Origin: Anolis carolinensis
Lineage: Eukaryota
Length of the DNA stretch: 64,000 bases
Reading direction: 5' to 3'
Assembly (NCBI RefSeq): GCF_035594765.1
Contig: NC_085845.1
Coordinates: forward strand, 83,074,024-83,138,023
Shown here: positions 18,640 through 51,204 of the stretch, one piece after another
Layout of the letters: each line of letters opens with the position of its first letter
Position numbering within the stretch: the first letter of the stretch is position 1
The notes under the pieces: model-generated
The model's database searches: none
What the model saw: the letters and a program-made list of their open reading frames with translations, nothing else
Told to the model about the DNA's origin: nothing
Position numbers and translations under genes: made by a program

Positions 18640-21600
18640 ATGCATTGCCCTGTGTTCCTTTTCTTCCTCCTGAGGTACTCTTTCTGGTATACAATAGCTG
18701 CGCCCATTCATTTCTTGCCACCTCCACTGTTGGTCATCTGCACAGATCCACAACACCGAGTCTATCAGAGGCATGACACTGAACATCATCTCTCATGTAT
18801 CTGGGACTGGAAAATGGAGCTGAAGTATTCAAGAAACAGAGGATTAGATATCGAGATTGGGAAGCCAGGCATGCAAGTCCCTCCCCATTGTAGCTGGTAC
18901 CGGGATTCCAACTTGATAGAGAATACAAATCACTGGTCAGGTCAGGTAGTCATGGATATGGGCCTAGATGAAGGAGGCCTTCATCCACCCCAGGCCTTTA
19001 GTCATATCACAGTGCAATGCAAATCAGCCTGGTGCCATGCACCCACTTGTGCTTACAACAACCTGACCATTGAAATTTCTAGGCAAGATGTCCATCTTTT
19101 CCTCCTCTCACCACAGACTCTTCCCATCCAGGAATGGCAACCAGTGCAGCTAGGCTGGTGTGCACGCCTAAAAAATGTCATCTGGAACTACCGCTTCGAG
19201 AGCCCTGGGGGTAGTCCTGCAGACCATCTCATTCCTAGCAACCAGCACAATGAGTCACTCACACCCACTCTTTATCCCTATGCAAAATTGCACCAAGCAT
19301 GTGCGTCATATTATAACTACCATGTAACCGTGCGTTATCCACACCGTGGAGTCTACACTGCTTCACTCCATATTGAGAATGGGCCTCAACTCAGACGCAG
19401 TCTTAACGTGTATGTACAGCCTGCTCTCCTCCATGTATTTAGTGCTTCCTCCACACTGCTCAGTCGCACTTACATGACTGTCAACCTTTCTTGGACTCTC
19501 CAACCCCTTAGCCCCAGAATAATGGCATATTCATTGATAGATGTGCAGGGACTGGACCAGTGGTCTCCTCGCTGCAATTATAACCCTTTTGCTCTACAAA
19601 GTGATTTCTGTGCTGCTCCGAAATCATGGAATTCTGGGGGGAAAGTGATGGCCAGCATCTATTTTCGTATTAGTGAGAAAATATCTGGACAGCTCAAGGG
19701 GGAAATTAGATTTTCCAATAAGACTGTGATGTTCAGAGAAAGCAATGCAAACCCAACTTACCTCGTGCTCAACCCACAAAAAACTAAAGCAGGCACTTAC
19801 ATTTTCAGTCATGCTTTGGGACTATACTATTCTACCCAAGAAAGAAAGAATACCAGTGCCACTGGTGGGAATTCTAGCTTTCACTATATTTTTTATCAAC
19901 AACAGGGCCTCTCTTACCTACTCATCATCGAATTTATACAGCCACAGTGGTACCGGTTCAACATACACTTATACCTGAACCGAAGGGAGACTTTGTTCAA
20001 GGCTTTAGGAGAAAAGGATACAGAAGTTCAGATTTTCAATGGACATTCTACTGATGAAAGTTTGGCCTATGTTTTGTGGTTTATTCCTATACAACATCCG
20101 CAGCTGCAGTGTGAATGGGTCTTTGATTTGCAGCTTTTTGATTCTGGGAAGGAGCACCTCCTTTGGAATAGCACTTACACATATGGAAATCATGTAAAAA
20201 ATGCCACTCTTCTTCTTTCTCACTCTGTTTCATTCTTCAAACCTTCCCTGTATGCAGGGTTTGTAGCAAAAGTGAACTGCAGAAAAAGTGGGCTTGTCCA
20301 TGCTGTTCTCAAAGCCTCGGTCAATACTTACTCTTCAGAAATGAGGGAGTTAAATGTGGCCTGTCAAAAAAGTTACTGTCATAACCTGATAGCTACAATC
20401 CATAAACCAAATTCATTTCAGTCAGTCATACAATACAGGAGAATGTCAGCAGTTAGCTTGCAATCAACTGCAAAAGCAGAATGCAGGACAAGTTCAGTTA
20501 TACATATACTCTGGAAGATCTACAGCCTTAAAACTGCATTGTCTATTCCTGACTGGTCACATCCTCTCAAGCTACCTAATGAAATAACTACAGATAGTGT
20601 AATATTTCACATGCCCAGGAATGTTTTGTATTATGGCTTTTATTATGTTAATGTGACCATGACAGTTTTTCTACCTGCATATAATATAAACATCACTGAG
20701 TCAGATTCAATATTACTCCAAATTCTAGAAAGTGATTTAGTAGCAAACATAATTGGAGGATCGTTCCGGACGGTTGGTGTTTCTGATCATTGGACTCTGG
20801 ATGGGTCCACCTCATCTGATCCTGATTCACACAATCCCCTGGAAGGAATCACTTTTAACTGGTACTGCACAAAACGGGAATTGGATTATTCAACAATGAG
20901 GCTGAGTCCCGATGAAAAATGCCACCCAACTCAGGTTGATTTAAACTGGACACCTTCCATTGATCCCGTTCAAATAGTGGAGCCCAACACACTTCAGGAA
21001 AATACAAAATACTATTTTACCTTAATAATTCTGAAGCAGAATAGATCAGCACGCACACTCCAGACAGTTCATGTGCTTCATGGTTCTGTACCAGTGTTGA
21101 ACATCACCTGTTTTGAAAATTGTGAGAAAACCATCAAAACAACAGAAAGTTTTGTTCTGTCTGCAAGATGTCTAAATTGTGAAAAATCTCAATCCGTTTA
21201 CTTTTGGACCCTTCTTTCAGCAAATTCCAAGGAAATACAGTTTGACTGGGCATCTAAAACTACAACTGGAAGGTCAAATCCATCCATACATATAAATCCA
21301 TTAGCATTCAGATATATGACTGACAAATACTATACTCTTAGTCTCAAAGTAAATTCACAGGGAAAATCCACAGCTGTTTACACATATTCATTCTATGTAA
21401 ATGCTCCGCCCCAGACTGGAAAGTGCAACATTTATCCAAAGAAAGGCACAGCCTTCCTTACAAAGTTTGTTATTCAGTGTACTGGCTTTGAAGACAAAGA
21501 TGGACCTCTTACATATAAAGTGATAGCACATTCTGATTTAACAAAAATGACTAACATATCTTCTCTACAGAATAATAAATTTGGAACAATATTGTACACT

Positions 21601-24600: not shown

Positions 24601-26388
24601 CAAGTTAATATGGACGAGAAAGAGATGAAAAAGCTTCATCATGAGCTTCACAGACTCAGACACAGCAAGAAATATGAACCATTAACAGAGGATGAATTGA
24701 TTGTCTTGCAGAAAAAAGTAAAAGCTCAACATCTAGCTTTTGTTTTTATAAAGGATATAATCTGCCACCTTCTTTTCTCATCCTGCATTTTATCTGTTGC
24801 TTATTCCACAGAACCCACCACTAGCTTTTATTACAATAAAGCTATATATGAAAAATTTTCTCCTGGCCTGTCAAAAGTAAATAAGCTGGAACATATTTAC
24901 ATATGGATGAGCAATGTCTTTGTGCCACTGATACACAATGACTACCAACCAACTTATCTTTCAGAATCTTGGTCCAAAATACTCGGTTTACCCAGAATGA
25001 GGCAAATAAGGGCACAGAATACTGAAAAAACATGTTTTCCTCCACACAGCTTTGTAAATAAATATGAGATTAGTAAGAGCCACTGCCGCCAAAATTATTA
25101 TACCCATCCAGAAGATCAGCGTAACTACCTTGGATCATGGCTCATCCCAGCCACTGGGTCTGCTTCAAATCACATCAGCAATTTTCAAGGATTTACATAT
25201 GAATCTGACATTGAACAGTGGGAATATAAGTCATATGGTGTTTTAAATGCATATGGACCTGGAGGGTATTCTTTTTATTTCTTTCCACGAGAACAGCAGC
25301 CCAATACAACATTGAGACTGGTTGATTTGCAAAGAAACAGCTGGCTTGATGAGCGGACCTGGGCAGTGATTTTTGAATTAACAACATTTAATCCGGATGT
25401 AGATCTATATTGTAGCATCACTATCATATTTGAGACTAGCAATCTGGGTATTGTTAATGCAAGTTTGTCTGTTCATTCTTATAACCTCTCTGTTTTTTAC
25501 TATCAAAGCAACGCTCAGTTGTTTATATATGGACTTATGGCATATATTCTTGTTTTTTACCTTGCTGATGAATTTCACATGTTGCGTCAACAAAGAATAG
25601 GTTATCTCCAAACAGCAACTAACTTAAATAATTTTGCAATAAAAACCATCTGCTTGTTTTTTATATTGATAATTGCACTAAAATTTAAGTTGGCCCGTGA
25701 TTTGTTAGAGCTTCTTGTAAGTAACCCGGAAGAATTTATTCCCTTTCATGTAGTTTCTCAAGTTGATCAGCTCTATAGGATGGTTACCGGTGTTTTGGCC
25801 TTTCTTCTGATTTTAAAACCATACCGCTATTTCAGATTTTTATACAAAATGCGGTTGGCAGAAAAAGCTATGTCAGTTGCCTTTCCTGAGTTGGTTTATA
25901 TGACAATGTTCACAGCTCTACTGCTTTCTGCATATATGTTATTTGGTTATCTCATATTTGGTGAAAAAGAGTGGAATTATAATTCTTTGATTCATTCTCT
26001 CCAGACTGTAGTTTCATACTGCTTTTTTGGACAAAGAACAACTGGCGTTACATCTGACAGATGGTTGGGACTATTTTTCAGAGCTTCATTTACATTTGTA
26101 ATAATATTTATATGTCTCAATTTATGGAGAGCCCTAATAATCATTAATTATATGACAATGAAACACCCTGTCTATGAACAACATTCGGATGAAGCTGAAG
26201 CAATAAATTTTGTGGTTTTGAAGATTCGCCGTATGTGGCTTTCCATCACCAAGCCGGGATCATCTATAAGTGACAGTGATGTTACCAACACTTTTATTTT
26301 TGGAAAGCCTATAGCCAAGGGTGATAAACAGCGAGGGCTAAAAACCACACGGGTAGATGGCAAGAAAATGGTTTATCTTTCTGTTTGA
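18640..26388 (+). CDS. PKDREJ: PKDREJ-like polycystin-1-family protein, copy A (2582 aa, single exon)
   Basis: Signal-peptide-like N-terminus, REJ module (LDGSTSSDPDS...FNWYC), GPS-like W..C...W..HCIC, PLAT/LH2 (YTGSRLGSGTTADVF), polycystin TOP domain (LGLPRMRQIR, WLDERTWAV) and a multi-TM channel. C-terminus GKKMVYLSV; AATAAA at 26410. Confidence 0.93.
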   Translation: MHCPVFLFFLLRYSFWYTIAAPIHFLPPPLLVICTDPQHRVYQRHDTEHHLSCIWDWKMELKYSRNRGLDIEIGKPGMQVPPHCSWYRDSNLIENTNHWSGQVVMDMGLDEGGLHPPQAFSHITVQCKSAWCHAPTCAYNNLTIEISRQDVHLFLLSPQTLPIQEWQPVQLGWCARLKNVIWNYRFESPGGSPADHLIPSNQHNESLTPTLYPYAKLHQACASYYNYHVTVRYPHRGVYTASLHIENGPQLRRSLNVYVQPALLHVFSASSTLLSRTYMTVNLSWTLQPLSPRIMAYSLIDVQGLDQWSPRCNYNPFALQSDFCAAPKSWNSGGKVMASIYFRISEKISGQLKGEIRFSNKTVMFRESNANPTYLVLNPQKTKAGTYIFSHALGLYYSTQERKNTSATGGNSSFHYIFYQQQGLSYLLIIEFIQPQWYRFNIHLYLNRRETLFKALGEKDTEVQIFNGHSTDESLAYVLWFIPIQHPQLQCEWVFDLQLFDSGKEHLLWNSTYTYGNHVKNATLLLSHSVSFFKPSLYAGFVAKVNCRKSGLVHAVLKASVNTYSSEMRELNVACQKSYCHNLIATIHKPNSFQSVIQYRRMSAVSLQSTAKAECRTSSVIHILWKIYSLKTALSIPDWSHPLKLPNEITTDSVIFHMPRNVLYYGFYYVNVTMTVFLPAYNINITESDSILLQILESDLVANIIGGSFRTVGVSDHWTLDGSTSSDPDSHNPLEGITFNWYCTKRELDYSTMRLSPDEKCHPTQVDLNWTPSIDPVQIVEPNTLQENTKYYFTLIILKQNRSARTLQTVHVLHGSVPVLNITCFENCEKTIKTTESFVLSARCLNCEKSQSVYFWTLLSANSKEIQFDWASKTTTGRSNPSIHINPLAFRYMTDKYYTLSLKVNSQGKSTAVYTYSFYVNAPPQTGKCNIYPKKGTAFLTKFVIQCTGFEDKDGPLTYKVIAHSDLTKMTNISSLQNNKFGTILYTGYHHKTPPSFLPSGTPSKKYALEICVQVYDAYGVFSQVTLQAIVHDPRRSKPADIILSELYNLTSGINSYLEMKDYFNIGFLIYVASSVLNDIEASPLTYDSKNDLREILLNASSRIPMNEVGKINQIVSIICQITQNVNKISRRLQLLAVRKLKEASEALKGHRDKDLGSKEAEIISNGIFTGLSNVVRASLLNHRNTNINAVKEAIQVTEIVADLVLQGKVPGERKTSIEAKDWSIHLWKNEKWELSKIISQRLHCRNCLYLKLKQEKYTELPADAVISTLHYVFKENPFSWLPNSGDIHTVVTGFKMLAVTANGDIIGINPEVTEFIMDKNDKKSAAFNLTIGPDKKLYKTTGGFNIEIKKGSKHVFIQILCDIDVTFTVSIYLGLNVSHPPIASYIAFPDKDPIPHQMDSATTDCAVKAPYMLCLPQSLLSSLSGNRRRKWNISVVVQSELIVRHQTTKVVRIAVFTADCLVLNGIQNQWEEGTCRLGSHTSWSKIHCICEAKKHNTTITTTTSRQLLIDSDPHIRFLAGKFALYPNPLDINKIILAEFDANPVPLFTVFSIFAGYIFFTTWATIKDKADLKRKNKILVLPDNDPYHKVRYLITIYTGSRLGSGTTADVFVELTGENGVSDIHCIKHPQFPTLFRASVDTFLLTTKYELGDILSLHIWHNNGGSSPNWYLSRVKVYNVQTKKSWLFICRNWLGLGKADGKIERLFPAKHAHSSLNKMDYFFISLAKDLEETHVWLSVFSQVVTGSFTRVQRVSCCLVIMLINLLFNIMFFSAVEEKELTSRRQRYMKSLYIGFVSALFSIPIQLTITWLFKYSQEKPSVSTKGESGLKQILPSLSETSPNDNTSSSPEMLSMKKHHVNFSNINASNNDAKDKDAETNEAEHRTVHAEFLFFFQTPKFPWWWRYVSWVLIFIISVVSSFFIILYGLTYGYTTTMEWFIASMTSFFESVFLLQTLKMCLISAVSTITLKFCESIPWKSTEQYLQMKLVQVNMDEKEMKKLHHELHRLRHSKKYEPLTEDELIVLQKKVKAQHLAFVFIKDIICHLLFSSCILSVAYSTEPTTSFYYNKAIYEKFSPGLSKVNKLEHIYIWMSNVFVPLIHNDYQPTYLSESWSKILGLPRMRQIRAQNTEKTCFPPHSFVNKYEISKSHCRQNYYTHPEDQRNYLGSWLIPATGSASNHISNFQGFTYESDIEQWEYKSYGVLNAYGPGGYSFYFFPREQQPNTTLRLVDLQRNSWLDERTWAVIFELTTFNPDVDLYCSITIIFETSNLGIVNASLSVHSYNLSVFYYQSNAQLFIYGLMAYILVFYLADEFHMLRQQRIGYLQTATNLNNFAIKTICLFFILIIALKFKLARDLLELLVSNPEEFIPFHVVSQVDQLYRMVTGVLAFLLILKPYRYFRFLYKMRLAEKAMSVAFPELVYMTMFTALLLSAYMLFGYLIFGEKEWNYNSLIHSLQTVVSYCFFGQRTTGVTSDRWLGLFFRASFTFVIIFICLNLWRALIIINYMTMKHPVYEQHSDEAEAINFVVLKIRRMWLSITKPGSSISDSDVTNTFIFGKPIAKGDKQRGLKTTRVDGKKMVYLSV

Positions 26389-27026
26389 GAAAGGTAGTGA
26401 TAAACACTAAATAAATGTGATTATAATTCCGTCACAAGCTGATCTCAGTAGAGTTTTTATACTAATACTATCGTGGGATATTCAATTCCCCTCATTGCTG
26501 TTTCCACCTCTGACGATTTTCTATGTCCTCTTAGTATACAAAGGGATCTTGTAGCAGCTTAGAAGCTAACTTAAAGCAATTGTGGCATATGTTTTTGTAC
26601 CCATAAGGCTCATCTACACCAGCTGTTTAGCTTGGTGTCAATGTGTCCTGAAGCAGCCCCAGATCCAACATATTTTTTCTGTATCTGGGCCCTGGTTTAC
26701 ACAACCATGGAGCACAGCACTTCTCTGAGGCAATATAAAACCTACCTTCTCCGTGTCACCACCACTGCTGCTCCTAGTGGGTCATGGAGCTCAATTAGTT
26801 ACTCCTGGGTTATGGTGGTTGCCTCTGGTAACATCAGAACTGGGTGCCTGTATGATAAGGAAGAAGAAGGGGACAATTCCTCTTTTTCCTGATTCCACAA
26901 GGGCCTTCTTCTAAGATTGGCAGAGTTGTCCATGCAACTAGGAAGAAGGAGGAGGGTTGTGTGTGTATCTCTGCCAATAGCAGGACAGAGCACCCACATT
27001 ATCGGGAAGAAGGGGGACTGCAATCA

Positions 27027-27600
27027 GGCCTGTAGTCAGAAAAAAATTGGGAGAGGTTGAAACTTTTCCCCCTGATATGATTTTTCAGGCCAGTGTCTCC
27101 TGGTCTGGCATGAAATCTCAACAAGGCCCTGAAATTACCCCCATTGTGCAAAAGTTCTTCGCAGGTAATAGATCCTGAATCTTTGCTCCCTCTCAAAGCC
27201 AGTTCTTTTTGGCCACAAAGGACAATAGTTTCCACAACTGGTAGAAGTTTCTTTCTGTTTTCTTCTTTCTTCTTATTTCCTTTATCATTAAAACGTTTTC
27301 CCCTGTGAATTAGCACAAAATTTTCAGCCAAACACAAGTTGTTCTGATGGTATTGTGTTTTGATGTCTATTGAAGACTTCTATTGCATTTTCCATTGCAC
27401 AAATAACTTAGCAACCAATATACCAAGCTTTTGATGACCACCTTTACCCACAACTTCACCAAACACCATACCATACTTGTAGAATGCACCTTGTACATGA
27501 AATGAGTAGACCAACCAGGAAAATTTGCTTAACCATTTGGGTTGAAGGAGAGGTACTTCTGAATTTCAATCAGATCCTCCCATGGGATACCTTTTTGGGC
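27027..27600 (-). mobile_element. Degraded hAT transposase fragment (THAP12/PRKRIR-ZMYM-like)
   Basis: Peptide ENRKKLLPVVETIVLCGQKELALRG...GNFRALLRF is typical of this hAT group; reading frames are broken. Confidence 0.65.
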
Positions 27601-28664: not shown

Positions 28665-28665
<1 letters not shown>

Positions 28666-28704
<39 letters not shown>

Positions 28705-28866
28705 GACACAGCAAACAAGATAGAAATGCTGGGCTTCGTATCACAAAATCACAAGTCGAACACTTCCCAAGTGTCTAGGACTGTGTGATGTATTTTCGAA
28801 TGATGCGTGCAGATCCCAGCAGGGTGGCCTTTTGCAGTTGGCAGATCGTAATTTTGTCACTGTCTA

Positions 28867-28912
<46 letters not shown>

Positions 28913-28925
28913 GTTATTATTATTT
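28666..28925 (-). mobile_element. R4/Dong-clade LINE 3' end embedded in (TAA)n microsatellite
   Basis: Minus strand encodes ...ICQLQKATLLGSARIIRKYITQS*, a restriction-like endonuclease C-terminus. (TTA)n lies on both sides. Confidence 0.7.
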
Positions 28926-29616: not shown

Positions 29617-29638
29617 GTATATATATATATATATATAA

Positions 29639-29696
<58 letters not shown>
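29617..29696. repeat. Compound (TA)n(CA)n(TA)n microsatellite
   Basis: Read directly. Confidence 0.95.
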
Positions 29697-29698
<2 letters not shown>

Positions 29699-29726
29699 AA
29701 CTAGCATAGCATGTTATTGCGGGGAG

Positions 29727-34140: not shown

Positions 34141-34653
34141 AAGTGTGTGTGTGTGTATATATATAGAGAGAGAGAGTGTGTGTGTGTGTAACAGAGGCAA
34201 CACATACTCAATTTCACAGCTTTTTGTGTCCTTATCTTGTTCTGCTTCTTGTTTCAAAATCCGTTGAATAAATTCTTCTACTATGGAAGGGGATCCCCCA
34301 AATTTGGCTTGGCTGCATTCTACCCCTGCCAAGCCGTGTTGCTTGGGAGTGAAAAATATATGGTACACCATCTCTTCCTGTATGCTCTCGTGCTAAGGTC
34401 AACATGATCAGGCATCCACCAATTATTTCTTCTACTTCATTTTATTCTACCAGGCAGGTATGTTAGTTAGAAGTTGAACTTATAAATCACCAAATATTCA
34501 CAAAAGGTGAAAAATACATCTGGATAGTATAGATATAAGAAGATCATTTAAACCCAGAAGAAAATTATACAGAAGAGCTCTGAAGAGGAGTATGGAATCC
34601 TTGGAGAGAAGGATGTGTAAGACATTCTATGACCATATTGCCAATGGACATTG

Positions 34654-34720
34654 ATTGCTCAAGGGAAAGACTCTAGAATCCACTCAGATTCTTCCACCAT
34701 GTTGCTAGGAAACAGCCGTT
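34654..34720 (+). promoter_or_regulatory. Putative proximal promoter module of PKDREJ-like B
   Basis: TCTAGAAT at 34672-34679 and X-box-like GTTGCTAGGAAAC at 34701-34713. Confidence 0.5.
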
Positions 34721-40700: not shown

Positions 40701-42427
40701 TGAAATTCCAGCATCATGAGCTGACTGTGCTTAGAGCTTCCGAACAATACCAACCCTTAAAAAAGGAAGTTGTTAGAAAATTGCGCAGAATACAGAGGAT
40801 TAAACATCTGTCTTATGCTTATGTGAGGAATATGTTCTGCCATCTTTTTTTCTTTGCTTTAATATTAACTGTTGCACACCCTGCAGAAATCACAAGTTTA
40901 TATTATTCCAATCAATATATGACAGAGAAATTATCTGTTGATCTATCTAAAGTAATTACAATAGAGGATGTTTACACATGGGTGAAAAATGTCTTTCTGC
41001 CATTGATACACAATGACGATGAACCAACTTATCTTTCAGGCACTTGGTACAAAATTCTTGGATTGCCCAGAATGAGACAAATCAGAAGTAAAAGTTCTCC
41101 GACAAAATGTTCCTTTCCATATGGTTTGACAAATACATTAAGTATGAATGATATTCATTGTCGAAAGAAATATGGAATTGATCCTGAAGATCAAGCTGAC
41201 TATCTTGGATCATGGTCAATACCGGCCAAGAGGGCAATTCCTATTGACAGCCCTGGTTTTTTAGGTTTCATTTATGAACATCCTGCTTATGGGTGGAAGT
41301 ATGACTCAGATGGGAAATTCAACAGCTATTCAGCCAGAGGATATAGCTTTTATTTTTTTCCAGGGGAGCCACAAGATAATTCAACAACGAGATTAGAAAC
41401 TTTGGAAAGAAACAAGTGGCTTGATGATAAGACATGGGCACTGATTATTGAACTGACCACCTTTAACCCAGATACAGATCTATACTGCTGTATTTCGGTC
41501 ATATTTGAGTTTTCTTACATTGGCCCTATTGTCTCTAAGGTGTCTGTTAAATCTTGCCATCTCCCTATTCTCACTGACCAATCCACCAGTGAGATTTTCT
41601 TTTTGCTAGCCACTGTATATATGCTCATAACATATATTTCTGATGAATGCTGGATGATATATAAAGATAGGCTGAAATATATAAAATCAGCTACCAACTT
41701 AATCAATCTTGGAATGAAGACATTTTGTATTATTTATATAATATGCCTTGTATACAAATTTCATCTTGCTGTGGAATTAGTGCATTTTTATCTTCTTAAT
41801 CCATATCAGTTCATTCCTTTCCATGCAGCTTCCCAGTTTGATGAAGCAGTCAGGATAGTTATGGCATTTTTGCTTTTTCTCTTAGTTTTGAAAATGTTCC
41901 GCTATTTCAGATTCTTGTATGGTGTACGCCTGGCCCAGAAATCCTTACATGAAGCTTTGCCTAAAATGATTAATCTGTCTTTTGCAGGGGGCATATTCTT
42001 TTTTGGGTTTATGTCACTTGGGTATCTAGCATTTGGACAACATGAAGTAACATTTCGAACTCTATTAGATTCTTTTACCACTGTATTGTCTTACTGTGCC
42101 TTGGCATTTAGGGACACTGAATTTTCATCTGATAAGCTTCTAGGTGGTCTTTTCTTAGGTTGTTTTCAGTTTGTGATGATTTGTGTTTTTGTCAATTTAA
42201 GTGAAGCTATTATAATCTCTGCTCATGTGGACATGAAAGAAGCTGTTTATGAACTACCATCAAATGAAGCTGAAGTGATAAACTACCTAGTCCAGAAAAT
42301 CTACAGGTTCTGTTTTTTTCTTACCACTGGTAGAAAAACTTCAAAAGAAACTACGTTCTTAAATCGGATACTGTATGGAAAAACTGAAAAACATAATAAG
42401 CGACAGACTAATAGGCAGTGTATGTAG
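34757..42427 (+). CDS. PKDREJ: PKDREJ-like polycystin-1-family protein, copy B (2556 aa, single exon)
   Basis: Colinear with copy A over its full length (signal peptide, REJ, GPS-like, PLAT, TOP, channel). The C-terminal tail is altered. AATAAA at 42467. Confidence 0.92.
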   Translation: MQNLLHHIFLFCSFCCLYYQVAAPLHFLPPPLLVTCSKPGNRVYQRQDNELRLSCLWDGLIVMHYSRMPGVNFGEEESDFQAPPYCRWFQNSVLVNSTNLWSGNLTLGTGLPGNSPHPTWAYSQITVQCTSTFCPPPLCFHRNLSIEVSGQDVRLFLFWPRTRPILEWQPVHLGWCARLKSSTWIYHFRSQGGSPADLLIPSDQHTELPPFTAYLNAELQQVCRSYYSYHLTVRYSHRGFYTASVTIEHGPQVSVSTDFYVEPALLHVFSANSKLLSHPHGTFSLSWSFLHLSQGIVAYKLLNIHDTRGWSHSYSYNSFALHSNFCDVHKPQQSKEKVVATIYFQTNERSFGELSGKLDFSNKTLIFSASNAVPNYLTINPQKVKVGTYIVSHTIGLYYSMEDGGTANAIHKNSSSHYIFYQQAGFSYLVVVEFVQLQLFRFSTHIYLNRKGRLFKSLREKEIEIHVFNSSFPDEGLAYIVWFIPVQHPLLQCKWVFNLQLFDSKDKNVVENYSYAYGNHVRNATQFIPDSVLPFNPALYTGFVAKMKCISSKFVLMVLKATFNLYGSKVIESRLACHQNACSIAKINIQRSETSKFILHYAPGTEFTLATDTQINCPGPKQTDVIWNIYKVENRASTPDWSKPFNPPGIRKRNDMTLNIPSSSLDDGLYVFNFSMKLKSLDTWDITKSSDSVLVEIGPDNLMAAIVGGNFRTVSFSDQWILNGSIFSNGEMIQSFQKGLSFIWYCTKHKSDYASMTLSRNGKCHPDQADLKWITSSGPVQTVRPKTLQGNNTYYFLLMVQYGSRTAHAKQAVYVRIHSPLILNVACIENCDKALVPTERFCLSGKCLNCRPNQSSYYWSLYSIQYNEIDFDWFSKTTTGRSIPYLRINAFAFETMTEHSYILTLKVSTTEGQTAIYKYSFYVNGPPRLGKCVLNPNIGIAFLTKFIIQCSGFEDKNEPLTYKVIAAYNQIETSTISSIENNTLGIIIYSGHDYKTPRSFLPNGVPSQNSALVIYIQVYDALGASSQVTLQATVHDEKKSKSLDIIHHKLHSLINGQSAPMTTFRITKDYFDIGYFVYMVASVLNNVETSFARQDSTSDLRQILLNMSAEIPANTAEEINQVILSICQVTHKTMEINEESQLIAIKKLKEASKALIRLRDKDFSSKETDILSSGILIGLSNVLKASLSDYKKVNINVIKETISVMEILADLVLQDKVPGENETIMKTENWRIHLQKYMKGDLSGNVSNRKYCRNCFYPKLKEGRHAELNVDAVVTTVFYVFEINPFPWLLFTEDIGTIVTGFKMTGTQTNGDVISITPDLVEIIMARKDEVIFDLTIGPDKMLSKTTGGFSFETKRSTKDIFIQIVSKRNITFQVFIYPGHNISRPPLATFTVSHHSPPTPIENDTTIPECAVVAPYILCLPQSLLWSPVYSNRGDKVSISIVLQSHPFVREQTTKIVRIAVFAAECLDLDGIEKQWKEGTCSLGPETSWSKIHCICKAKELSTITGSPRTAGNSETGLRFLASKVFSFPNHKDMKGSILIDDVHYPIAELTLFIIFILYTLMAIWVLTKDKVGREDEIIDLPDNDPFDKIKYLITIYTGSRPRSGTRASVFIELIGQNGASDVHQLKHPHFPCTLHRGSIDTFLLTTKINLGDITSLHIWHDNCSFGPSWYLSRIKVQNLETEQSWLFWCRKWLSLHISDCQIERTFAVTNPKTPISKIDCFLITVSNDVRGNHLWLTVFTYNRIHGSLSRFQRLSCCLAILLSSLMFNSLIFASEKDQFIFSKLSYLRSIRTGIAGALISIPVQLILTTLFKHSEKRPSPHSPAQSQQKKRPSPVTESLCTEDNIGDAPLAEVTSQPFPPFNANVNNNYHIETVIHRKKTENPQLNRCSELTAWSLVFCIPGVSAFFIIVHGLSFGYITSLEWLLASMASFCVHMFLFETLKIVVISAWSAGSAKYCRDISWPSYQAIQFKSRSQTASEMKFQHHELTVLRASEQYQPLKKEVVRKLRRIQRIKHLSYAYVRNMFCHLFFFALILTVAHPAEITSLYYSNQYMTEKLSVDLSKVITIEDVYTWVKNVFLPLIHNDDEPTYLSGTWYKILGLPRMRQIRSKSSPTKCSFPYGLTNTLSMNDIHCRKKYGIDPEDQADYLGSWSIPAKRAIPIDSPGFLGFIYEHPAYGWKYDSDGKFNSYSARGYSFYFFPGEPQDNSTTRLETLERNKWLDDKTWALIIELTTFNPDTDLYCCISVIFEFSYIGPIVSKVSVKSCHLPILTDQSTSEIFFLLATVYMLITYISDECWMIYKDRLKYIKSATNLINLGMKTFCIIYIICLVYKFHLAVELVHFYLLNPYQFIPFHAASQFDEAVRIVMAFLLFLLVLKMFRYFRFLYGVRLAQKSLHEALPKMINLSFAGGIFFFGFMSLGYLAFGQHEVTFRTLLDSFTTVLSYCALAFRDTEFSSDKLLGGLFLGCFQFVMICVFVNLSEAIIISAHVDMKEAVYELPSNEAEVINYLVQKIYRFCFFLTTGRKTSKETTFLNRILYGKTEKHNKRQTNRQCM

Positions 42428-42659
42428 CGATACAAAGGCTTATCTTTATGTTTGATGAATGTGTAAAATAAATTAATTTTTGTAATAGTTTCTCCATGTT
42501 GTTGGCATTCAATGATTTTAAAATGCACACATACACCATGTGGTCAGGTTTCTTTGGTTGTAGCCTGTCTTCCCTTGCTTCCACACAGGTTGTTCCATGG
42601 GATAACTTTCTTTTACCTGCATGGTTACTGAATTAAATATTTGATTAATTAAATGTGGA

Positions 42660-43762
42660 TGTTGGTGTCATCTGTATGCAGATGATGTACAACTCTGTTA
42701 CTCCTTTCCACTTGCTGCTAAGGAGGCTGTTCAGGTCCTGAGCCAGTGCTTGGCAACTGAGACAATCTGGATGAGGGAGAAGAAATTGATCCCAGACAAG
42801 GCAGAGGTCTTCCTGCTTAGTTGGAAGGCCGAGCAGGGTATAGGGTTACAGCCTGTACTGAATGGGGTTACACTCCCCCTGAAGACACAGGTTCGCAGCT
42901 TGGGAGTGATCCTGGACTCATCACTAAGACTGGAACCCTAGGTCTCAGTGGTGGTCAGAGGAGCTTTTGCACAATTAAAACTTGTGTGCCATTTGTGCCT
43001 GTACCTTGGGAAGTCAGACGTGGTCACAACAGTCCATGCTCGTGTTACGTCCTGAATAGATTATTGCAACGCGCTCTACGTGGGGTTGCCTTTGAAGACT
43101 GTTCGAAAGCTTCAAGTAGTCCAATGGGCAGCAGGCAGATTTCTAACTGAAGCTACATATAGGGAGTATATAACCCCCCTGTTACGTCAGCTCCATTAGC
43201 TGCTAGTCTGCTACCGAGTACAATTCAAAGTGTTGGCTTTAGTCTATAAAGCCCTAAACAGTTCCAGCCCAGCTTACCTATCCGAACGTATTTCCCTCTA
43301 TGAACCACCCCGGAAGCTCAGATCTTCGGGGGAGGCCCTGTTCTCAGTCCCACCTCCTTCGCAGGTGTGGTTGGTGGAGATGAGAGACAGAGCCTTCTCA
43401 GTGGTGGCCCCTCGGCTGTTGAACTCCCTCTCTAGTGAAATCAAATCAACCCCTCCCTCCTGACCTTCAGGAAAAAAAACTAGAAACGTGGATGTGGGAC
43501 CAAATTTTTGGATAGAAAATTTTCAGTGCAATAAGTGAATATGGAATAGTGCAATGACAACTGGAACATCCTCGGACTATGATATTGGATTGCGTGGTTT
43601 TAATAATTGGTTTTAATGTTTGAGATGTTTTAATGTATATGTTTGTTTGCTGAATGTATGTTTGTATGGCATCAAATTGTTGCCTATATGTATATATGTG
43701 AGCCGCCCTGAGTCCCCTTTGGGGTGAGAAAGGTGGGGGTAAATAAATAAATAAATAATAAA
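42660..43762 (+). mobile_element. L2-clade LINE 3' portion
   Basis: YADD, LIPDKAEV, SLGVILDS and RDRAFSVVAPRL motifs, then a (TAAA)n tail. Confidence 0.85.
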
Positions 43763-45597
43763 CACTGATAGGTGCATGTGCAGCAATAATGCAGGTTAAA
43801 AAAAAAAACCTGGGCCCACCCAGCTTCCAGGGCACCATGTGTTCTTAGTCAGCCAGGAATAACCACAGTCCTTGGGATGCTGTGGTTCTAAGCACTCCAG
43901 GGTAGAAGCCCTTCAGGGAAGCTTCTCAGGCATGCTTCCTGTTGTGCTACCTCCTGACAATTTTAATGTAAACTGTCATTTTGAACCCCAGAAATTGTGT
44001 ACTATAGCATCACGTGATCTACAAACCGTAATGCTCCCTTAAGATATGATTATTCTCCTATGATTTAAAGATGGGTATACAGCAGACATGGGGAATATAC
44101 TGTGCTTCTGAAGACACACCAGTTGTTTAGGAAATGTTGCATAAGGAAAGTAGATTGCTAACTACAGCATTGAAAAACAGTGTGTCTTTATTACACATTA
44201 AAACTATTTGTTTCAGAATATACTATCTTATATTCAGTTGAATGGCATTAAAGAGAATACGGCTTTATCTTCTCTGTCCTTGTTTGCCAAGTTGTTTACA
44301 ATCTCCAGATGTAAGCTGTTTGCTCAGAGTTCGCTTTTTATGTATTTATTTATTTAGTTACTTAATTTTTATCCCACCTTTCTTTGACCTGGGTTGCTTG
44401 AGACACAATAGGGTATTTTGTAGGGGTGTGTGAAATGGCAGAAATTTGTCCTATTTTTGTTGTGTTGTTCTGTTTGCAGTGCGCCCCCCCCCCCCCAATT
44501 CTGTTTTTGAGAAGATTACTAGAGATTAGGAGGGGGCCATTCGGATTCATAATTTGGGGTCCGGAGTTCCGTTTCTATTTTGGGAAGAATCTTCCAAAAA
44601 ACAGAATCGGGGGGGGGGGGATTCAAAACGAAAACAAAATAGGTTTCACCCTAATATTTTCTAAGATTTACTTATATTTATGAAAATATAGGTTGATCCT
44701 ATGTAGAAGTTCACAGCATTAACATTACGGCAAATACTACAACTGTTCCAGAGTTCCACTGACCTTGGTTTTAACATTTCTCAGTTTGTCTGTGGCAATG
44801 AAAAAGGCAGGTTCATTTTTGTGGACACTCAACCAGCAAAGAGTGAGAAATCTAGCTAAGCCATCTCGTCTCCTTTCTGCCATTCAGAAAAGTAACAACT
44901 GACCGGATGTATTAACACCATTTAATAAAGATAATAATAATGGCTTGGGCAGATTAAGCCTCTCATTTCCATATCTGCATAAAAGACATGGAATAGGCTA
45001 AATATGTCCTGTAGGTTTGACCCATATGTTCTTCTCACAATCAAAGAAATCACAAGCCAAATTTAAATTTCATTACAATTTATTGACCCATTTATGTAAA
45101 TGATTTTAAAATGCCAATATAATTGGTTCTTTTCTATTTATTCTTAATACGAAAATTAAAACAAACCATAATTCAGCACAATTTTGATGTAATTTTAGAC
45201 ATTCAGAGATGAAATGTGACCCTTTATAATCAAGTATGGGCAAACTTCGGCCTGGTAGGCTGTTAGGAAATGTGGGAGTTGAAGTTCAAAACACCTGGAG
45301 GGCCGAAGTTTGCCCATACTTGCATCATAATATAATGAGGAAGAGGCCATAGTTCTGTGTCAGAGCCAATATTTACATACAGAACATTCTTGATACGTAA
45401 CTCTGGTGCCTCAAGGAAAACTCTTAGAGGAAGGAACCACTACTCATTCAGATATTACTGGACTCCAAATTCAGTCCATCTGGAGATGCTACAGGGTCCC
45501 CAACTCTGTATCAAAGAACATCTGTTTCTTCGTATATCATGTTTCAATAATGTCAAGGGATCTTTTCTTTTCAGCAGATAGGAAGGTTTGGACACTG

Positions 45598-45628
45598 GTT
45601 GCCCAGTGACATGCAAAGTTCTAGAATT
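45598..45628 (+). promoter_or_regulatory. Putative proximal promoter module of PKDREJ-like C
   Basis: X-box-like GTTGCCCAGTGAC at 45598-45610 followed by AAAGTTCTAGAATT, the same layout as copy A. Confidence 0.5.
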
Positions 45629-45705
45629 CCCACAGTCATTCACTTTATGGCAGTTGAAGGACAGCATTCTCTCCTAATCCAAGCAAGCTGTCTTCTTACT
45701 TCAAG

Positions 45706-48700
45706 ATGCATCCCCTGTTCTCTCTGCTACTCCCCTTGTGTTCAGTCTTTTCTCAGTATGCAGGAGCAATGTGTCCTTATTTATTATTACCACCATTGTT
45801 TTTCATCTGCTCTGACCAAGAAAACCATATTTATCAGCAGCAAGACAACAAACACCAGACTTCACATTTATGGGGCAGGATTACTAAAACGTATTATGTA
45901 AGAACTGCAGGGTTTATTTCAAGAACTGGGAAGCAACAGGCAGAACTGCCATCTTTCTGCTGCTGGTACTGGAGCTCTCCTTTTACCGGCTACTGCAACA
46001 AACATAAAACAGACTATGAAATCATGAACCTAAGCGAAAATGGGAAATGCCACCCAGAACAGTTAGATTTGAAATGGACAGCATCCAAAGATCCAGTTCA
46101 AACAGTGCAACCCAAAATACTTCAGAAAAATACTGTTTATTACGAGTATTTTCACCTGGTTGTTAGAAAAGAAAGCCACTTAGCACATGCAAACCAAATG
46201 GTACAGGTACGGCTTATCCCTGCTCTTTTGCTGAACAACACATACATTGAAAAATGTGGGATAGCAGTAATACCAACAGAAATATTTCCAGTGGTAATAC
46301 CTTCCAAGCAGTATGCTTTGACAGCACACATTGAAGTGTGTGATGTCCATGGAGCATATAACCATATAACTTTACAGACAAAAGTATATGACCCATCAAA
46401 AGGCCAGCGAACAGAGGTATTTCTGAATGAATTACAAAGTTTGATTAGTGGACCAACAGATCCAATAACAGCTGTTGTGAAAAGTAGGGATTACTTTAGG
46501 GCACTTGATGTCATCTACATAGTGGCTTCTATTTTAAATGATATAGAAGTTACACAAAGATTACATTCCGCGAAGACTGAGCTGCGGGAACTCCTTCTAA
46601 ATAGGTCTGCAGGAATTCCTACTACAAGTGTAACGGGAGCAAATCAAATGATCTCAAATATTTTTCAAATAACACATGAAGTTGCAGAGATAAACAGAAA
46701 ATCACAACTACTTGCAATGAAAAAAATCAAAGAAGTTATCGAAGAACTGAAAAAGCATGGCAACAAAGATTTGGGATTGAAAGGAAGAGAGATGCTTGGC
46801 AATGCTATTCTTGAAGGACTGTCCAATGTACAGAAAGCATCTTTGTTAGAAGGTGGAAATATCCACATAAATGGGGTTAAGGAAACCATTTATATGACCG
46901 AGATATTAGCAGATCTAGTCTTAGAAGGTAAAATTCCAGAAGAAAATGAAACTATTATGGAAGCCAAAGACTGGACTATCACATTAAGAAAAAATGAAAA
47001 AGGAGGTATTTCTGATCCATCCTCCAGGAGAAGAGATGGCAAGAACTACTTTTACTTCAAAATGAAACAAGAGGATAGTGATGAATTAACAAGAGATGCT
47101 GTAGTTTCCACGATTCTTTATGAGTTTGATAATAACCCTTTTCCTTGGTTGCCGTACGCCAGTGATATCAACACAATGATAACTGGATTCAAGATGACAG
47201 GAACCAAATATAATGGTGACAGGATTGGGATCGTGCCTGATGTTGCTGAAATGATCATGACTAGAAAAGACGAGAAAAGGAATGCCACTTTTCAGGTCAT
47301 GATCAGACATGATAAAAAACTCCCTAAAGCCACTGGAGAATTTAGTGTTGAAGTACTTAGGCAATCCAAAAACATTTTTATTCAGATTGTGACAAATAAG
47401 AAAACTGTTTTCCAGGTCTTCATATATCCGGGTCACAAGGTCAGCTATGATCCCATAGCTTTTTTCAGTGTTTCCTATAATAAGACGTCAGTGCCAATGG
47501 GAAAGTATTCTAGTGATGGTGACTGTGCATTTAAGGCCCCTTATATAGTTTGTCTTTCCCAGATATTGCTCAGATCCATATTCCAAGACAGCAGAGCAGA
47601 CAAACTGAACATTTCTGTGGTTTTACAGTCAGACCCATGGGACAGAGATACTCAACTTGTGGACGTTCGGCTTTTTACTGTTGAGTGTTTGTACCTGGAT
47701 GGAGTTGAAAGTCATTGGAAAGAAGGCTTCTGCACTCTTGGTCCTCAGACCAGCTGGCAAAAGGTGCACTGCATCTGCACAGGAAAAAGACGTGTTTCAC
47801 GGTCTGCAAACCCTCAACTAAGAACAGCCTTCAGCCACAGTCCCACATTTTTGGCTGGGAAAATAAAATATTCAAACCCAGTAAACGTAGGAAAGAGCCA
47901 GTCAACTCAAATACACCAAAATCTAGTGATACTGCTAACACTCCTTTTCATATTTTTATTATTCATTGTTTTGGCTATTTGGGCCATGAGAAAAGACAGG
48001 GCTGATATAAACAGCGTTGAGCATGTTATAGTCTTGCCAGACAACGACCCCTTTGATAAAGTGTGCTATCTGGTCACGGTATACACCGGCAGCCGTTTGG
48101 GAGCAGGAACGACCGCTGATGTTTTTATTCAGCTGACAGGAGAAAGAGCCGTCAGCGATGTACATTGCTTAAGACACCCCGAACACTTTACTTTTTTCCG
48201 TGGGGCCGTCAATACTTTTCTTGTGACTAGTAAAATTGACCTAGGAGAAATTTATTGTTTTAGAGTCTGGCACAATAATGAGGGTTCTTCCCCAAACTGG
48301 TTCTTGAGCAGAATTAAGGTGGAAAACATATACACAAAAAAGTCTTGGATGTTCATTTGCCGGAAATGGTTTGCACTTGATAAAGATGATGGCTTAATAG
48401 ATAGGTCATTTATTGTTGCTCACCCGAAAGCACCTTTACACAAACTTGATTTTTTCATGATAGACTTTGCTAATACTGTGGCAGACAACCACTTATGGCT
48501 CTCCATCTTTGCTCATGTGTGTACTGGTTCTCTGAACAGGCTTCATCGATTGTTTGCTTGTTTAACAATATTGTTATGCATCCTGTTTGTCAATATTATG
48601 TTTTTTAGTGCTGATGAGGAACGGCAAATGTTTTCTGAACATATACAATATTTGAGACCTATCTTAATTGGGGTTCAAGGGGCTTTTATTTCCATCCCTT

Positions 48701-51204
48701 TGCAAATGATTGTAACAGCTTTTTTCAAATATTCTCAGGAGGAGCCTTCAGTACAGAGCACAACTCATGCACTGCCTGCACAATATTCCACTTTCATGTT
48801 TGGAAATCTTAGTAACTGGAAGGAGTGCCTGCAGAAATGGTACCTTATAGAAACTGCTTCAAAAGACTTGGGAGATCATTTGCAGGAATTCCCTCCCAAG
48901 GCCTTAGACTCACCGAAACAAGAACAATCAAAAACGATAACATGGCGACACACATCTAAAAATTGGACCAACTGCACAATTCCGGAGGGTGATGCAAATG
49001 TAATTGCAATAGAAGATGACATGTCACAAGGTGCTAAGACCAACAACAATGTAAACAATAATTATCTAGAGAAGCACAAATCATATCTTCAAACTAGGTC
49101 ACCTAATATTGCCAACATGGTGTTCTGTCTAAGGCCGCAAATCAAAGTATCCTGGTGGAATAGATATGTTTTGTGGATATTTGTTTTGGTCACTTCTACA
49201 TTATCATCATTTTTTATCCTACTACATGGTCTGACCTTTGACTATGAAGCTTCGGTAGAGTGGTTAGTGGCCTCTGTTATTTCACTATGGGTGAATGTGT
49301 TTTTGCTTCAAATTATGAATATAGCTATTTTTTCATCCTTGAAGACACTCTATCCTAAAAACTGTAAAAGCCTTCAGTGGTCAAGCAAAGCGGCCTACTT
49401 AGAGATTAAACTCAGTGACATAAATATGGATGCTGATGATATGCGTGAATTACATTACGATTTAGTAAGAATGAGGGGCACCAAGCAGTATCATTCCTTG
49501 GAAGAGGATGAAATCACTATTTTTAAGAAAAGACAGAAAATTCAACGTCAAGCATTTGTTTTCATAAAGGATGTTGTATGCCATTTCGTCTTTCTGATCC
49601 TTATTTTAAACATTGCTTACTCAATGGAAAACACCACCAGTTTTTATTACAATCAGGATATTCATAATAAATTTTCTAATGGGCTCTCACGTGTCAATAA
49701 AGTGGAGGACATTTACACCTGGTTAAGAAAAGTCTTTCTGCCCTTGATTCACAATGACGATCAACCAACCTATCTTTCTGAGACTTGGTCCAAAATCCTT
49801 GGTGTACCCAGAATGCGACAAGTAAGGGCAAAAATTACGAAAAAAGCATGTTTCTATCAACAAAGTTTTGTACATAAATTTGTGATTAGTAAAAGCCATT
49901 GTCTTCATAAATATGGTATTGACGAAGAAAATCAAAGAGACCATCTTGGGTCCTGGACACTCCCAGCTGATAAACCTGTTTTGAATAATTTCACCAATAT
50001 TTCAGGCTTCACGTATCAATCGGTCACTGAACGATGGAAATATAGCTCATATGGAGAACTAAACACATATGGAGCAGGAGGGTATACTTTTAATTTTTAC
50101 TCAGAAGAAAATTTGCGGAATTCAACAAAAAGAATTGATTTTTTAGAAGAGAGCAGTTGGCTTGATGAAAATACCTGGGCACTAATAGTTGAGATGACAA
50201 CTTTTAATTCAGATGTAGACTTATTTTGCAGTATATCAGTTATATTTGAGCTTTCTTATTTGGGCCCTATTAACACAACCTTGTGGATCCATTCATACAA
50301 ACTGCCTGTCTTCAAGGAGCTAAGCAAGACAGAAAAATTTGTTTATGTAGCTGTTGGCTATATGCTTGTCTTTTATATTATTGATGAATGTTATGTGGTG
50401 GAACGACAAAGGCTAAAATACATAAAAACTGTCTCAAATTTAATTAATTTGGGAATAAAGGGTGTGTGCTTGTTCTTTCTCTTGCAACTTGGATTCAAAT
50501 TTGAGCTGGCTTCTGACTTATCTGAGTTGCATTTACTTCAGCCAGATGAATTCATTCCATTTCACAGGGTTTCTCATGTTGATAGAACACTGCGGATAAC
50601 ATTGGGGTTTTTGGCTTTCCTGATTGTTTTGAAAACCCTTCGGTATTCCCGATTCTTTTATGATGTGCGTTTGGCTCAACGATCCATCTTAGCAGCCCTT
50701 CCTGGTATCTGTTCCATGGCTTTAGTGGTGGCGGTGTACTTTTTTGTTTACATGACCTTTGGCTACCTGGTATTTGGCCAGTATGAATGGAACTACAATA
50801 CCATGACTCATTCTGCTCAGACTGTGTTCTCATATTGTGTTTCAGCTTTTAAAGACACTGCCTTTGAGTCCAACCGGGTGCTGGGGGGTCTTTTTCTAGC
50901 TACATTCATGATGGTAATGATCTGTGTCTTGATCAATTTATTTCAAGCTGTGATTATGTCTGCTTATGAGGACATGAAGCAGCCTGTCTATGAAGAACCT
51001 TCTGATGAAGCAGAGGTGGTAAATTATCTGTTTAATAAGGTTCGCAGAATATGTTTTTTTATAACCTGCAAAAAAGCATCTACGGCTGATACAGAACTTT
51101 TCAATCGAGTTCTGTTTGGGCATCCAGAGAGAAGAAATAAGCACCACCTGGGCCTCAAAGCCAGAAAAGTAAATGGCCGTAAAATAGTTTATCTTGTCAT
51201 ATAA
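45706..51204 (+). CDS. PKDREJ: PKDREJ-like polycystin-1-family protein, copy C (1832 aa, single exon, shortened ectodomain)
   Basis: Same TM/PLAT/TOP/channel architecture. LKTLRYSRFFYDVRLAQR, QTVFSYCVSAF and MKQPVYEEPSDE are PKDREJ signatures as I recall them. Two in-frame N-terminal deletions; AATAAA at 51239. Confidence 0.92.
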   Translation: MHPLFSLLLPLCSVFSQYAGAMCPYLLLPPLFFICSDQENHIYQQQDNKHQTSHLWGRITKTYYVRTAGFISRTGKQQAELPSFCCWYWSSPFTGYCNKHKTDYEIMNLSENGKCHPEQLDLKWTASKDPVQTVQPKILQKNTVYYEYFHLVVRKESHLAHANQMVQVRLIPALLLNNTYIEKCGIAVIPTEIFPVVIPSKQYALTAHIEVCDVHGAYNHITLQTKVYDPSKGQRTEVFLNELQSLISGPTDPITAVVKSRDYFRALDVIYIVASILNDIEVTQRLHSAKTELRELLLNRSAGIPTTSVTGANQMISNIFQITHEVAEINRKSQLLAMKKIKEVIEELKKHGNKDLGLKGREMLGNAILEGLSNVQKASLLEGGNIHINGVKETIYMTEILADLVLEGKIPEENETIMEAKDWTITLRKNEKGGISDPSSRRRDGKNYFYFKMKQEDSDELTRDAVVSTILYEFDNNPFPWLPYASDINTMITGFKMTGTKYNGDRIGIVPDVAEMIMTRKDEKRNATFQVMIRHDKKLPKATGEFSVEVLRQSKNIFIQIVTNKKTVFQVFIYPGHKVSYDPIAFFSVSYNKTSVPMGKYSSDGDCAFKAPYIVCLSQILLRSIFQDSRADKLNISVVLQSDPWDRDTQLVDVRLFTVECLYLDGVESHWKEGFCTLGPQTSWQKVHCICTGKRRVSRSANPQLRTAFSHSPTFLAGKIKYSNPVNVGKSQSTQIHQNLVILLTLLFIFLLFIVLAIWAMRKDRADINSVEHVIVLPDNDPFDKVCYLVTVYTGSRLGAGTTADVFIQLTGERAVSDVHCLRHPEHFTFFRGAVNTFLVTSKIDLGEIYCFRVWHNNEGSSPNWFLSRIKVENIYTKKSWMFICRKWFALDKDDGLIDRSFIVAHPKAPLHKLDFFMIDFANTVADNHLWLSIFAHVCTGSLNRLHRLFACLTILLCILFVNIMFFSADEERQMFSEHIQYLRPILIGVQGAFISIPLQMIVTAFFKYSQEEPSVQSTTHALPAQYSTFMFGNLSNWKECLQKWYLIETASKDLGDHLQEFPPKALDSPKQEQSKTITWRHTSKNWTNCTIPEGDANVIAIEDDMSQGAKTNNNVNNNYLEKHKSYLQTRSPNIANMVFCLRPQIKVSWWNRYVLWIFVLVTSTLSSFFILLHGLTFDYEASVEWLVASVISLWVNVFLLQIMNIAIFSSLKTLYPKNCKSLQWSSKAAYLEIKLSDINMDADDMRELHYDLVRMRGTKQYHSLEEDEITIFKKRQKIQRQAFVFIKDVVCHFVFLILILNIAYSMENTTSFYYNQDIHNKFSNGLSRVNKVEDIYTWLRKVFLPLIHNDDQPTYLSETWSKILGVPRMRQVRAKITKKACFYQQSFVHKFVISKSHCLHKYGIDEENQRDHLGSWTLPADKPVLNNFTNISGFTYQSVTERWKYSSYGELNTYGAGGYTFNFYSEENLRNSTKRIDFLEESSWLDENTWALIVEMTTFNSDVDLFCSISVIFELSYLGPINTTLWIHSYKLPVFKELSKTEKFVYVAVGYMLVFYIIDECYVVERQRLKYIKTVSNLINLGIKGVCLFFLLQLGFKFELASDLSELHLLQPDEFIPFHRVSHVDRTLRITLGFLAFLIVLKTLRYSRFFYDVRLAQRSILAALPGICSMALVVAVYFFVYMTFGYLVFGQYEWNYNTMTHSAQTVFSYCVSAFKDTAFESNRVLGGLFLATFMMVMICVLINLFQAVIMSAYEDMKQPVYEEPSDEAEVVNYLFNKVRRICFFITCKKASTADTELFNRVLFGHPERRNKHHLGLKARKVNGRKIVYLVI

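Follow-up and report, generated by a model that had tools for sequence, protein, structure and literature searches.

Does the green anole (Anolis carolinensis) carry three working PKDREJ genes side by side and, if so, how old are they and what has kept them? The question is raised by the PKDREJ locus of this lizard, a 64 kb window of genomic DNA (the whole stretch analysed here) from a scaffold of 207 Mb, in which there are exactly three open reading frames (ORFs) of at least 300 aa, all on the + strand and called copies A, B and C in the order in which they lie. We conclude that these three long intronless ORFs are real, intact and selectively maintained PKDREJ genes. Taken as a whole, the data are very probably to be read as an ancestral squamate triplet under purifying selection, with pores that have diverged among the copies and with products that, by homology, would be polycystin-1-type subunits of sperm.

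An uninterrupted ORF of 5.5–7.7 kb in DNA of ∼38% GC is too long to have arisen by chance. Moreover, A and B can each be aligned over their full length to the Sceloporus orthologue without a change of frame, hence neither has a stop, a frameshift or a transposable element (TE) insertion, and the uninterrupted ORFs together with full-length single-frame alignments to orthologues place each whole coding sequence in one exon. An earlier sequence-only reading of this DNA had proposed three same-strand intact single-exon ORFs of 7.7, 7.7 and 5.5 kb, each with its own signal peptide; the ORF listing and the ortholog alignments bear out the former, and for the latter a short hydrophobic, signal-like segment is present at the N-terminus of each copy and kept in orthologues, as a putative signal peptide would be. 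Pfam models of REJ, PLAT, Polycystin_dom and PKD_channel are matched by all three proteins above the curated cut-offs, with REJ domain (PF02010) scores of 310.8 bits in A and 285 bits in B and a remnant of only 32.5 bits in C. C-type lectin or EGF modules N-terminal to REJ gave no Pfam match at E ≤ 0.01 in A, B or C. The plan of 11 transmembrane (TM) segments, in which PLAT follows TM1 and precedes Polycystin_dom and PKD_channel, is found in all three with consistent hydropathy peaks. Their G-protein-coupled receptor proteolysis site (GPS) region is of the PKDREJ type, with C-x-C present, the HL/T cleavage triad absent and an insert of ∼20 residues before the stalk, a layout that also occurs in caecilian, platypus, bird and turtle PKDREJ.

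The three proteins are 45–47% identical to one another in pairwise comparisons, and C can be aligned to A only from about A residue 994 onwards. An nr fragment named PKDREJ from Anolis carolinensis matches copy A at 100% identity, the closest relative of C is an Anolis sagrei protein (90% identity), and database neighbours down to 42% identity all carry the name PKDREJ. In PDB, the closest solved relatives of the PLAT-TM and channel halves are PC1, PKD1L3 and PKD2 (6a70, 7d7e; E ∼1e-36). Over its first ∼1,480 residues the old Ensembl/UniProt model G1KQX6 is an almost exact match to B; it starts at B residue 68, skips 23 residues, and is overall 91% identical to B and 54% to C. Because its overall identity to B is only 91% and that to C reaches 54%, G1KQX6 is probably a B/C chimera.

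The age of the copies was addressed with a maximum-likelihood tree of 63 proteins (LG+G4, 2581 columns; PKD1, PKD1L1-3 and tuatara outside the sample). In this tree the squamate sequences fall into three squamate-wide clades of 21 (A), 14 (B) and 19 (C) rows, each with a Shimodaira–Hasegawa-like approximate likelihood ratio test (SH-aLRT) support of 100 and each mirroring the squamate species tree. Together A, B and C form a single clade (SH-aLRT 100) beside turtle and bird PKDREJ, with platypus and caecilians outside, and C branches off first, followed by the split of A from B. Geckos are present in the A and C clades and have no member in B, which is sister to the whole A clade. An origin of B inside non-gecko A, i.e. 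after the gecko split, was rejected by the approximately unbiased (AU) test (delta lnL 439, p-AU 1e-65), and no relic of B was found in the ∼5 kb A–C spacer of the gecko Eublepharis. From the position of B as sister to all A, the AU test and the absence of B in geckos, it follows that both duplications predate crown Squamata and that geckos lost B. The triplet is ∼200 million years old and common to lizards and snakes.

Gene order tells the same story. A, B and C follow each other in this order on one strand in Pogona (an agamid), Zootoca (a lacertid) and Tiliqua (a skink), and A is followed by C in Eublepharis; the arrangement in Anolis is ancestral. The sequence-only reading had assigned the genes to PKDREJ and had supposed old duplications; the Pfam architecture, the nesting of all copies inside the tetrapod PKDREJ clade in the gene tree, and the squamate-wide clade formed by each copy uphold both. 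Its view of the array as a feature of ‘this squamate’ has to be given up, since the same order in Pogona, Zootoca and Tiliqua marks it as the ancestral squamate condition. The turtle Emydura has one single-exon PKDREJ, placed head-to-head with a 466-aa tetratricopeptide repeat (TPR) gene (TTC38-like), and A of the gecko adjoins a gene equal in length and orientation to that Emydura gene. No TTC38-like exons were found within the 18.6 kb upstream of Anolis A by tblastx with the gecko and turtle flanks. In Sceloporus undulatus (CM032823.1), C is found before A instead of after B, on the other strand and in head-to-head orientation at a distance of ∼2.3 kb; this is either a lineage-specific inversion or transposition, or a misassembly.

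Selection was measured per paralogue, as the sequence-only reading had proposed, by the ratio of nonsynonymous to synonymous substitution rates (dN/dS, omega) in Anolis–Sceloporus codon alignments (NG86, bootstrap 95% intervals, dS ∼0.36–0.42). Whole-gene dN/dS is 0.31 (0.27–0.36) for A, 0.41 (0.36–0.46) for B and 0.27 (0.24–0.32) for C, and the Polycystin and channel part gives 0.34, 0.56 and 0.13, respectively. Hence the whole-gene intervals are all below 0.5, every omega interval excludes 1, and the supposition that the copies were kept by selection is supported. B is the fastest-evolving copy, with an omega of 0.53–0.56 in its TM/channel half; the ectodomain parts of A and B give 0.23–0.36. 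For the N-terminal remnant of C omega is 0.49–0.61 with wide intervals, and in a three-taxon analysis with Pogona the part of the C ectodomain that Anolis retains has an omega of 0.30 along the Anolis branch. Across sauropsids, a dN/dS of 0.25 was reported for PKDREJ (PMC10776941). Thus purifying selection maintains A, B and C, with the relaxed strength that PKDREJ commonly shows. The Sceloporus B gene, whose RefSeq model is a 1797-aa spliced product without the channel domain, was considered as a possibly broken gene and this was ruled out by an intact single-exon ORF of 2554 aa in the genome; since that ORF is intact, the 1797-aa model is an annotation artefact.

Constraint is not spread in the same way over the three proteins. 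In the 63-sequence alignment, the segment of pore loop and TM11 is near-invariant throughout the C clade as well as in the PKDREJ of caecilians, platypus, birds and turtles. Copy A has exchanged the F-Q motif of TM11 for W-R/K in nearly all A-clade members with data, and its pore loop is variable; copy B has a conserved pore signature of its own. TM11 of A lies at 26062–26145 of the window, and in the same columns of 19 A orthologues the helix also often begins with R in place of L. Such basic residues in a helix that lines the pore may recall polycystin-1. Compared with the turtle protein, the channel part is 69–71% identical in C and 50–56% in A and B, and ectodomain regions are diverged to a similar extent in all three copies (∼47–58%). 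Judged by these identities, C keeps the ancestral channel, and the ectodomains of A and B are no more ancestral than that of C.

The ectodomain of C has a separate history in anoles. Anolis C keeps residues 1–84, 711–810 and 966–2611 of the 2611-aa Sceloporus C, all in one frame (tblastn, every high-scoring segment pair in frame 1), so that two in-frame deletions must have removed ∼626 and ∼155 aa. In agamids, lacertids, snakes and most geckos the C protein is ∼2600–2650 aa long, apart from a few shorter models that look incomplete. C has therefore lost ∼780 aa of ectodomain, including most of REJ, in the Anolis lineage, and the remainder of the gene is still constrained. Both junctions are crossed by contigs of three sequencing runs from three studies. 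What is left differs in the C model of Anolis sagrei (1693 aa), which retains Sceloporus C 127–176 and 972–2611; this remnant, like the order of the deletions, is read from the RefSeq protein model, and hints either at stepwise erosion of the ectodomain within anoles after the split of A. carolinensis and A. sagrei, or at an imperfect A. sagrei gene model.

The three genes also share a promoter element. The 8-mer TCTAGAAT stands 82–86 nt before each ATG, which confirms the claim of an upstream motif for each copy; six copies of it occur in the window versus 3.1 expected, and three of the four on the + strand are those of the three promoters. Together with an X-box-like palindrome in front of it, it forms a cassette (see the table). 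In Sceloporus, the cassette of A has the same layout as in Anolis A with 13 of 15 X-box bases identical, and B orthologues have a better palindrome than Anolis B. Conservation was judged in five squamate species where the annotated start looks true: in Anolis, Sceloporus, Pogona and Zootoca all three copies have TCTAGAAT 76–111 nt ahead of their ATG, as does B of Tiliqua, and the palindrome lies 10–11 nt before it, with a perfect form in the A copy of both iguanians and in B of Zootoca and partial forms elsewhere. Neither TCTAGAAT nor an X-box was found in the PKDREJ promoter of the turtle Emydura, where the gene starts ∼430 bp from the divergent 466-aa TPR gene within a GC-rich, CpG-island-like region. 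From this comparison, the cassette may be a squamate innovation. Downstream, AATAAA follows each stop, in keeping with the proposed polyA signal per copy, though by itself it is weak evidence in AT-rich DNA.

Contigs of sequencing runs (tissue labels coded) were mapped to the region 41001–47000 of the window, which contains the end of B and the start of C and leaves A outside. The sequence of the locus, including the deletion junctions of C, is reproduced with few single-nucleotide differences in contigs of several independent studies. Three small runs from three studies (43–82 Mb of contigs) cover B without joints up to 42461–42490, the longest contig over the 3′-end of B stopping at 42490, 18 nt after the AATAAA. 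In the same three runs, C is present, likewise without joints, as single contigs of 5.75–6.03 kb, which extend from 45420, 45656 or 45687 to 51440–51457; the one that begins at 45656 starts 29 nt after TCTAGAAT. The unique spacer 43801–45200 has zero depth in these runs, whose contigs cover only the ORFs and short flanks. The three small runs look transcriptome-like and a fourth looks like low-coverage DNA. This pattern fits unspliced mRNAs of B and C, and transcription of both is probable. A Logan contig with an A-type gene (SRR13336339) passes the AATAAA without a poly(A) tail and is uninformative on transcription.

The array itself is already published and annotated, and only some anole-specific details are new; the novelty implied by the sequence-only reading does not hold. 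Karin, Gamble and Jackman (2020, Mol Biol Evol 37:904; PMC7038749) reported three tandem squamate PKDREJ duplicates under the names PKDREJ_A, PKDREJ_B and PKDREJ_C, and their supplement lists Anolis exons of 5428, 7672 and 7750 bp, matching our C, B and A. It is the same locus with the same three genes, only with permuted letters (their A is C here). Their B and C are entered in the supplement as ‘not present’ for human, chicken, turtle, crocodile and Xenopus. Like our comparison with G1KQX6, the authors flag ‘bad annotation’, and they report transcripts for all their loci from a crested-gecko multi-tissue transcriptome (PMC7038749). Karin et al. treat the genes only as phylogenetic markers; their paper has nothing on the domain loss in Anolis, the pore, the promoter or selection per domain, and is silent on whether gecko B was lost or never gained. 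RefSeq/NCBI annotates and names the triplet in many squamates, and no other paper discussing the three squamate genes was found in the literature searched. Apparently undescribed, then, are the deletions in Anolis C, the pore signatures of A and B, and the cassette of X-box and TCTAGAAT.

Features of the 64 kb window (positions in nt from its first base, except where protein residues are given)
Feature	Position	Strand	Remarks
Copy A	18640–26388	+	2582 aa; full-length single-exon PKDREJ paralogue; PKDREJ_C of Karin et al.
Copy A domains (Pfam)	protein residues		REJ 612–1058, PLAT 1592–1701, Polycystin_dom 2076–2283, PKD_channel 2291–2507
Copy B	34757–42427	+	2556 aa; full-length single-exon paralogue; PKDREJ_B of Karin et al.
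Copy C	45706–51204	+	1832 aa; ancestral-type channel module, shortened ectodomain; PKDREJ_A of Karin et al.
First in-frame deletion junction in C	45978–45982	+	Sceloporus C 1–84 meets 711–810; ∼626 aa gone
Second in-frame deletion junction in C	46270–46287	+	Sceloporus C 811–965 gone (∼155 aa, end of REJ)
Promoter cassette A	18532–18565	+	perfect 15-nt X-box-type palindrome 18532–18546, 11 nt gap, TCTAGAAT 18558–18565, 82 nt before ATG
Promoter cassette B	34646–34679	+	degenerate X-box-like site, TCTAGAAT 34672–34679, 85 nt before ATG
Promoter cassette C	45594–45627	+	X-box half-site, TCTAGAAT 45620–45627, 86 nt before ATG
AATAAA after A	26410–26415	+	22 nt past stop
AATAAA after B	42467–42472	+	40 nt past stop
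AATAAA after C	51239–51244 and distal 51458–51463	+	single contigs over C end at 51440–51457
Degenerate LINE reverse-transcriptase fragment	31233–31751	+	A–B spacer
Degenerate LINE reverse-transcriptase fragments	52200–54513	-	downstream of C

Between and around the genes, the window holds degenerate reverse-transcriptase fragments of long interspersed nuclear elements (LINEs) and very high-copy repeats. All that the spacers have in common are short, scattered repeats of mixed orientation, as expected from the earlier description of TE-rich spacers without visible mutual homology, and tblastn found no further PKDREJ relic within the window, which contains no N runs. Very high-copy short repeats lie at 45254–45323, 14977–15110 and 43601–43800, where contig depth reaches thousands to 130,000 in four of four runs; the element at 45.25 kb recurs near 15.0 kb, both inverted and direct. 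Two stretches, 14001–16000 (0.49) and 62001–64000 (0.54), are richer in GC than the rest of the window (36–44%), and ORFs in them gave no Pfam match.

Compared with known systems, the anole proteins share with mammalian PKDREJ the REJ domain, a GPS-like region without HL/T, PLAT, 11 TM segments, the channel domain and a single coding exon, as well as orthology by tree and moderately fast evolution (PMC13218627; PMC10776941); they differ in that there are three copies instead of one and in that Anolis C is without most of the REJ domain. The cassette sets the squamate genes apart from single-copy turtle PKDREJ, in which it was not found. Sea urchins have a REJ family as well, with suREJ1-3 and 10 SpREJ genes (PMC1934368), likewise a lineage-specific expansion of sperm-associated REJ-domain polycystin-1 proteins; that expansion was independent and in a distant phylum, and in contrast to it the anole proteins have no lectin or EGF modules detected by Pfam. 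The complexes of Polycystin-1 with PKD2 and of PKD1L3 with PKD2L1 (6a70, 7d7e) are the closest structures and offer a model of 1:3 receptor–channel assembly, with the limit that sequence identity to them is low and that any PKD2-family partner of an anole copy would be putative.

In the mouse, male germ cells produce PKDREJ, and the protein is located on the sperm head; it is associated with PKD2-family subunits and has an effect on fertility, and its location points to a part in the acrosome reaction (PMC13218627). By homology we infer a sperm role for the anole copies. Their history is shown by the data above: a single intronless tetrapod PKDREJ was duplicated twice in tandem on the squamate stem, C splitting off first and A and B thereafter, and purifying selection has since maintained the three as intact genes of one exon each, arranged A>B>C. 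C retained the ancestral pore module, A and B retained full ectodomains and each gained a conserved pore signature, and C of Anolis shed most of its REJ ectodomain by the in-frame deletions. The anole proteins would be 11-TM polycystin-1-type receptor subunits of male germ cells or sperm, as mouse PKDREJ is, and their pairing with PKD2-family channels may set Ca2+ signalling in sperm maturation, storage or contact with the egg coat. Labour might be divided between ligand sensing (A and B) and conduction or partner binding (C).

Several points weigh against this reading or soften it. The sperm role is drawn from homology, and the dN/dS values are pairwise, from a single species pair (NG86/YN00). 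Because tuatara is outside the sample, the ‘squamate stem’ date could be a ‘lepidosaur stem’ date. Regulation may have changed in squamates, given that the turtle promoter lacks the cassette and is a CpG island, and X-box (RFX) motifs also drive genes of somatic cilia. A literature search on RFX2 and Pkdrej brought up one paper with both names, whose title and abstract deal with something other than a link between the two. Exon-capture data could give the same contig pattern as mRNA, no run being recorded as RNA. A division of labour among the copies is something that conservation patterns suggest, and in its full form we hold it to be unlikely: after the triplication C would have become the channel or partner subunit and A and B fast-evolving ligand sensors with re-engineered, perhaps non-conducting pores, so that anole C was free to shed its REJ ectodomain piecemeal. 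Also unlikely is that one or two paralogues, likeliest A and/or B, left the male germ line and now serve in somatic sensory cilia (chemosensory, vomeronasal, oviductal or renal) in complexes of the PKD1L3/PKD2L1 type. X-box motifs are general elements of cilia genes and the cassette is conserved, the clade-specific conserved pore signatures of A and B suggest new functions, the promoter of the single-copy turtle gene differs, and among solved structures the channel half comes nearest to PKD1L3 of the PKD1L3–PKD2L1 complex. Set against this, one promoter cassette common to all three copies argues for a joint expression programme, and dN/dS of 0.3–0.4 is typical of reproductive PKDREJ, as the sauropsid value given above indicates.

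Could a copy be decaying or dispensable, its frame open by chance? B and the truncated Anolis C are the candidates, as the channel half of B evolves fastest, B was lost outright in geckos, and Anolis C is short by ∼780 aa with a high and loosely bounded omega in its N-terminal remnant. We disfavour this explanation as very improbable, however, because the 7.7 and 5.5 kb ORFs are intact in Anolis and that of B also in Sceloporus, B-clade proteins have ∼2520–2650 aa in most sampled non-gecko squamate genomes, and the few shorter B models (1797–2184 aa) look like annotation problems of the kind found in Sceloporus. Moreover, no omega interval reaches 1, the channel of C has an omega of 0.13, both C deletions are in frame, and B carries a conserved pore signature of its own. 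An assembly artefact, in which copies were falsely duplicated or collapsed or the C deletion is false, might be suspected in a TE-rich region whose older Ensembl models are chimeric or partial. It is refuted for practical purposes: copies that are merely 45–47% identical are no false duplicates, the same three genes occur in many independent assemblies, contigs from multiple studies reproduce the 3′-end of B and the 5′-region of C with both deletion junctions, the 5428 bp exon was already listed from an older assembly (Karin et al., PMC7038749), and C of A. sagrei is also short. The reading we prefer remains the ancestral squamate triplet with divergent pores.

For specialists such a triplet will be unsurprising, and its relevance is moderate, lying in reproductive and ion-channel biology; its own biology is unstudied in the literature searched. 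The array is an unexploited system, a three-way split of a fertilisation-linked polycystin over ∼200 million years with clean paralogue-specific pore signatures, and Anolis C is a natural ectodomain deletion in a lizard genus in which genome editing is available. The triplet could reveal the separate contributions of the REJ ectodomain and the polycystin-1 pore, and could show whether duplication of a reproductive protein tracks the mating system of squamates. If the split of jobs between the copies is true, it would be a natural experiment in which the receptor half of a polycystin-1 protein is taken apart from its channel half, perhaps in connection with sperm storage or competition in squamates.

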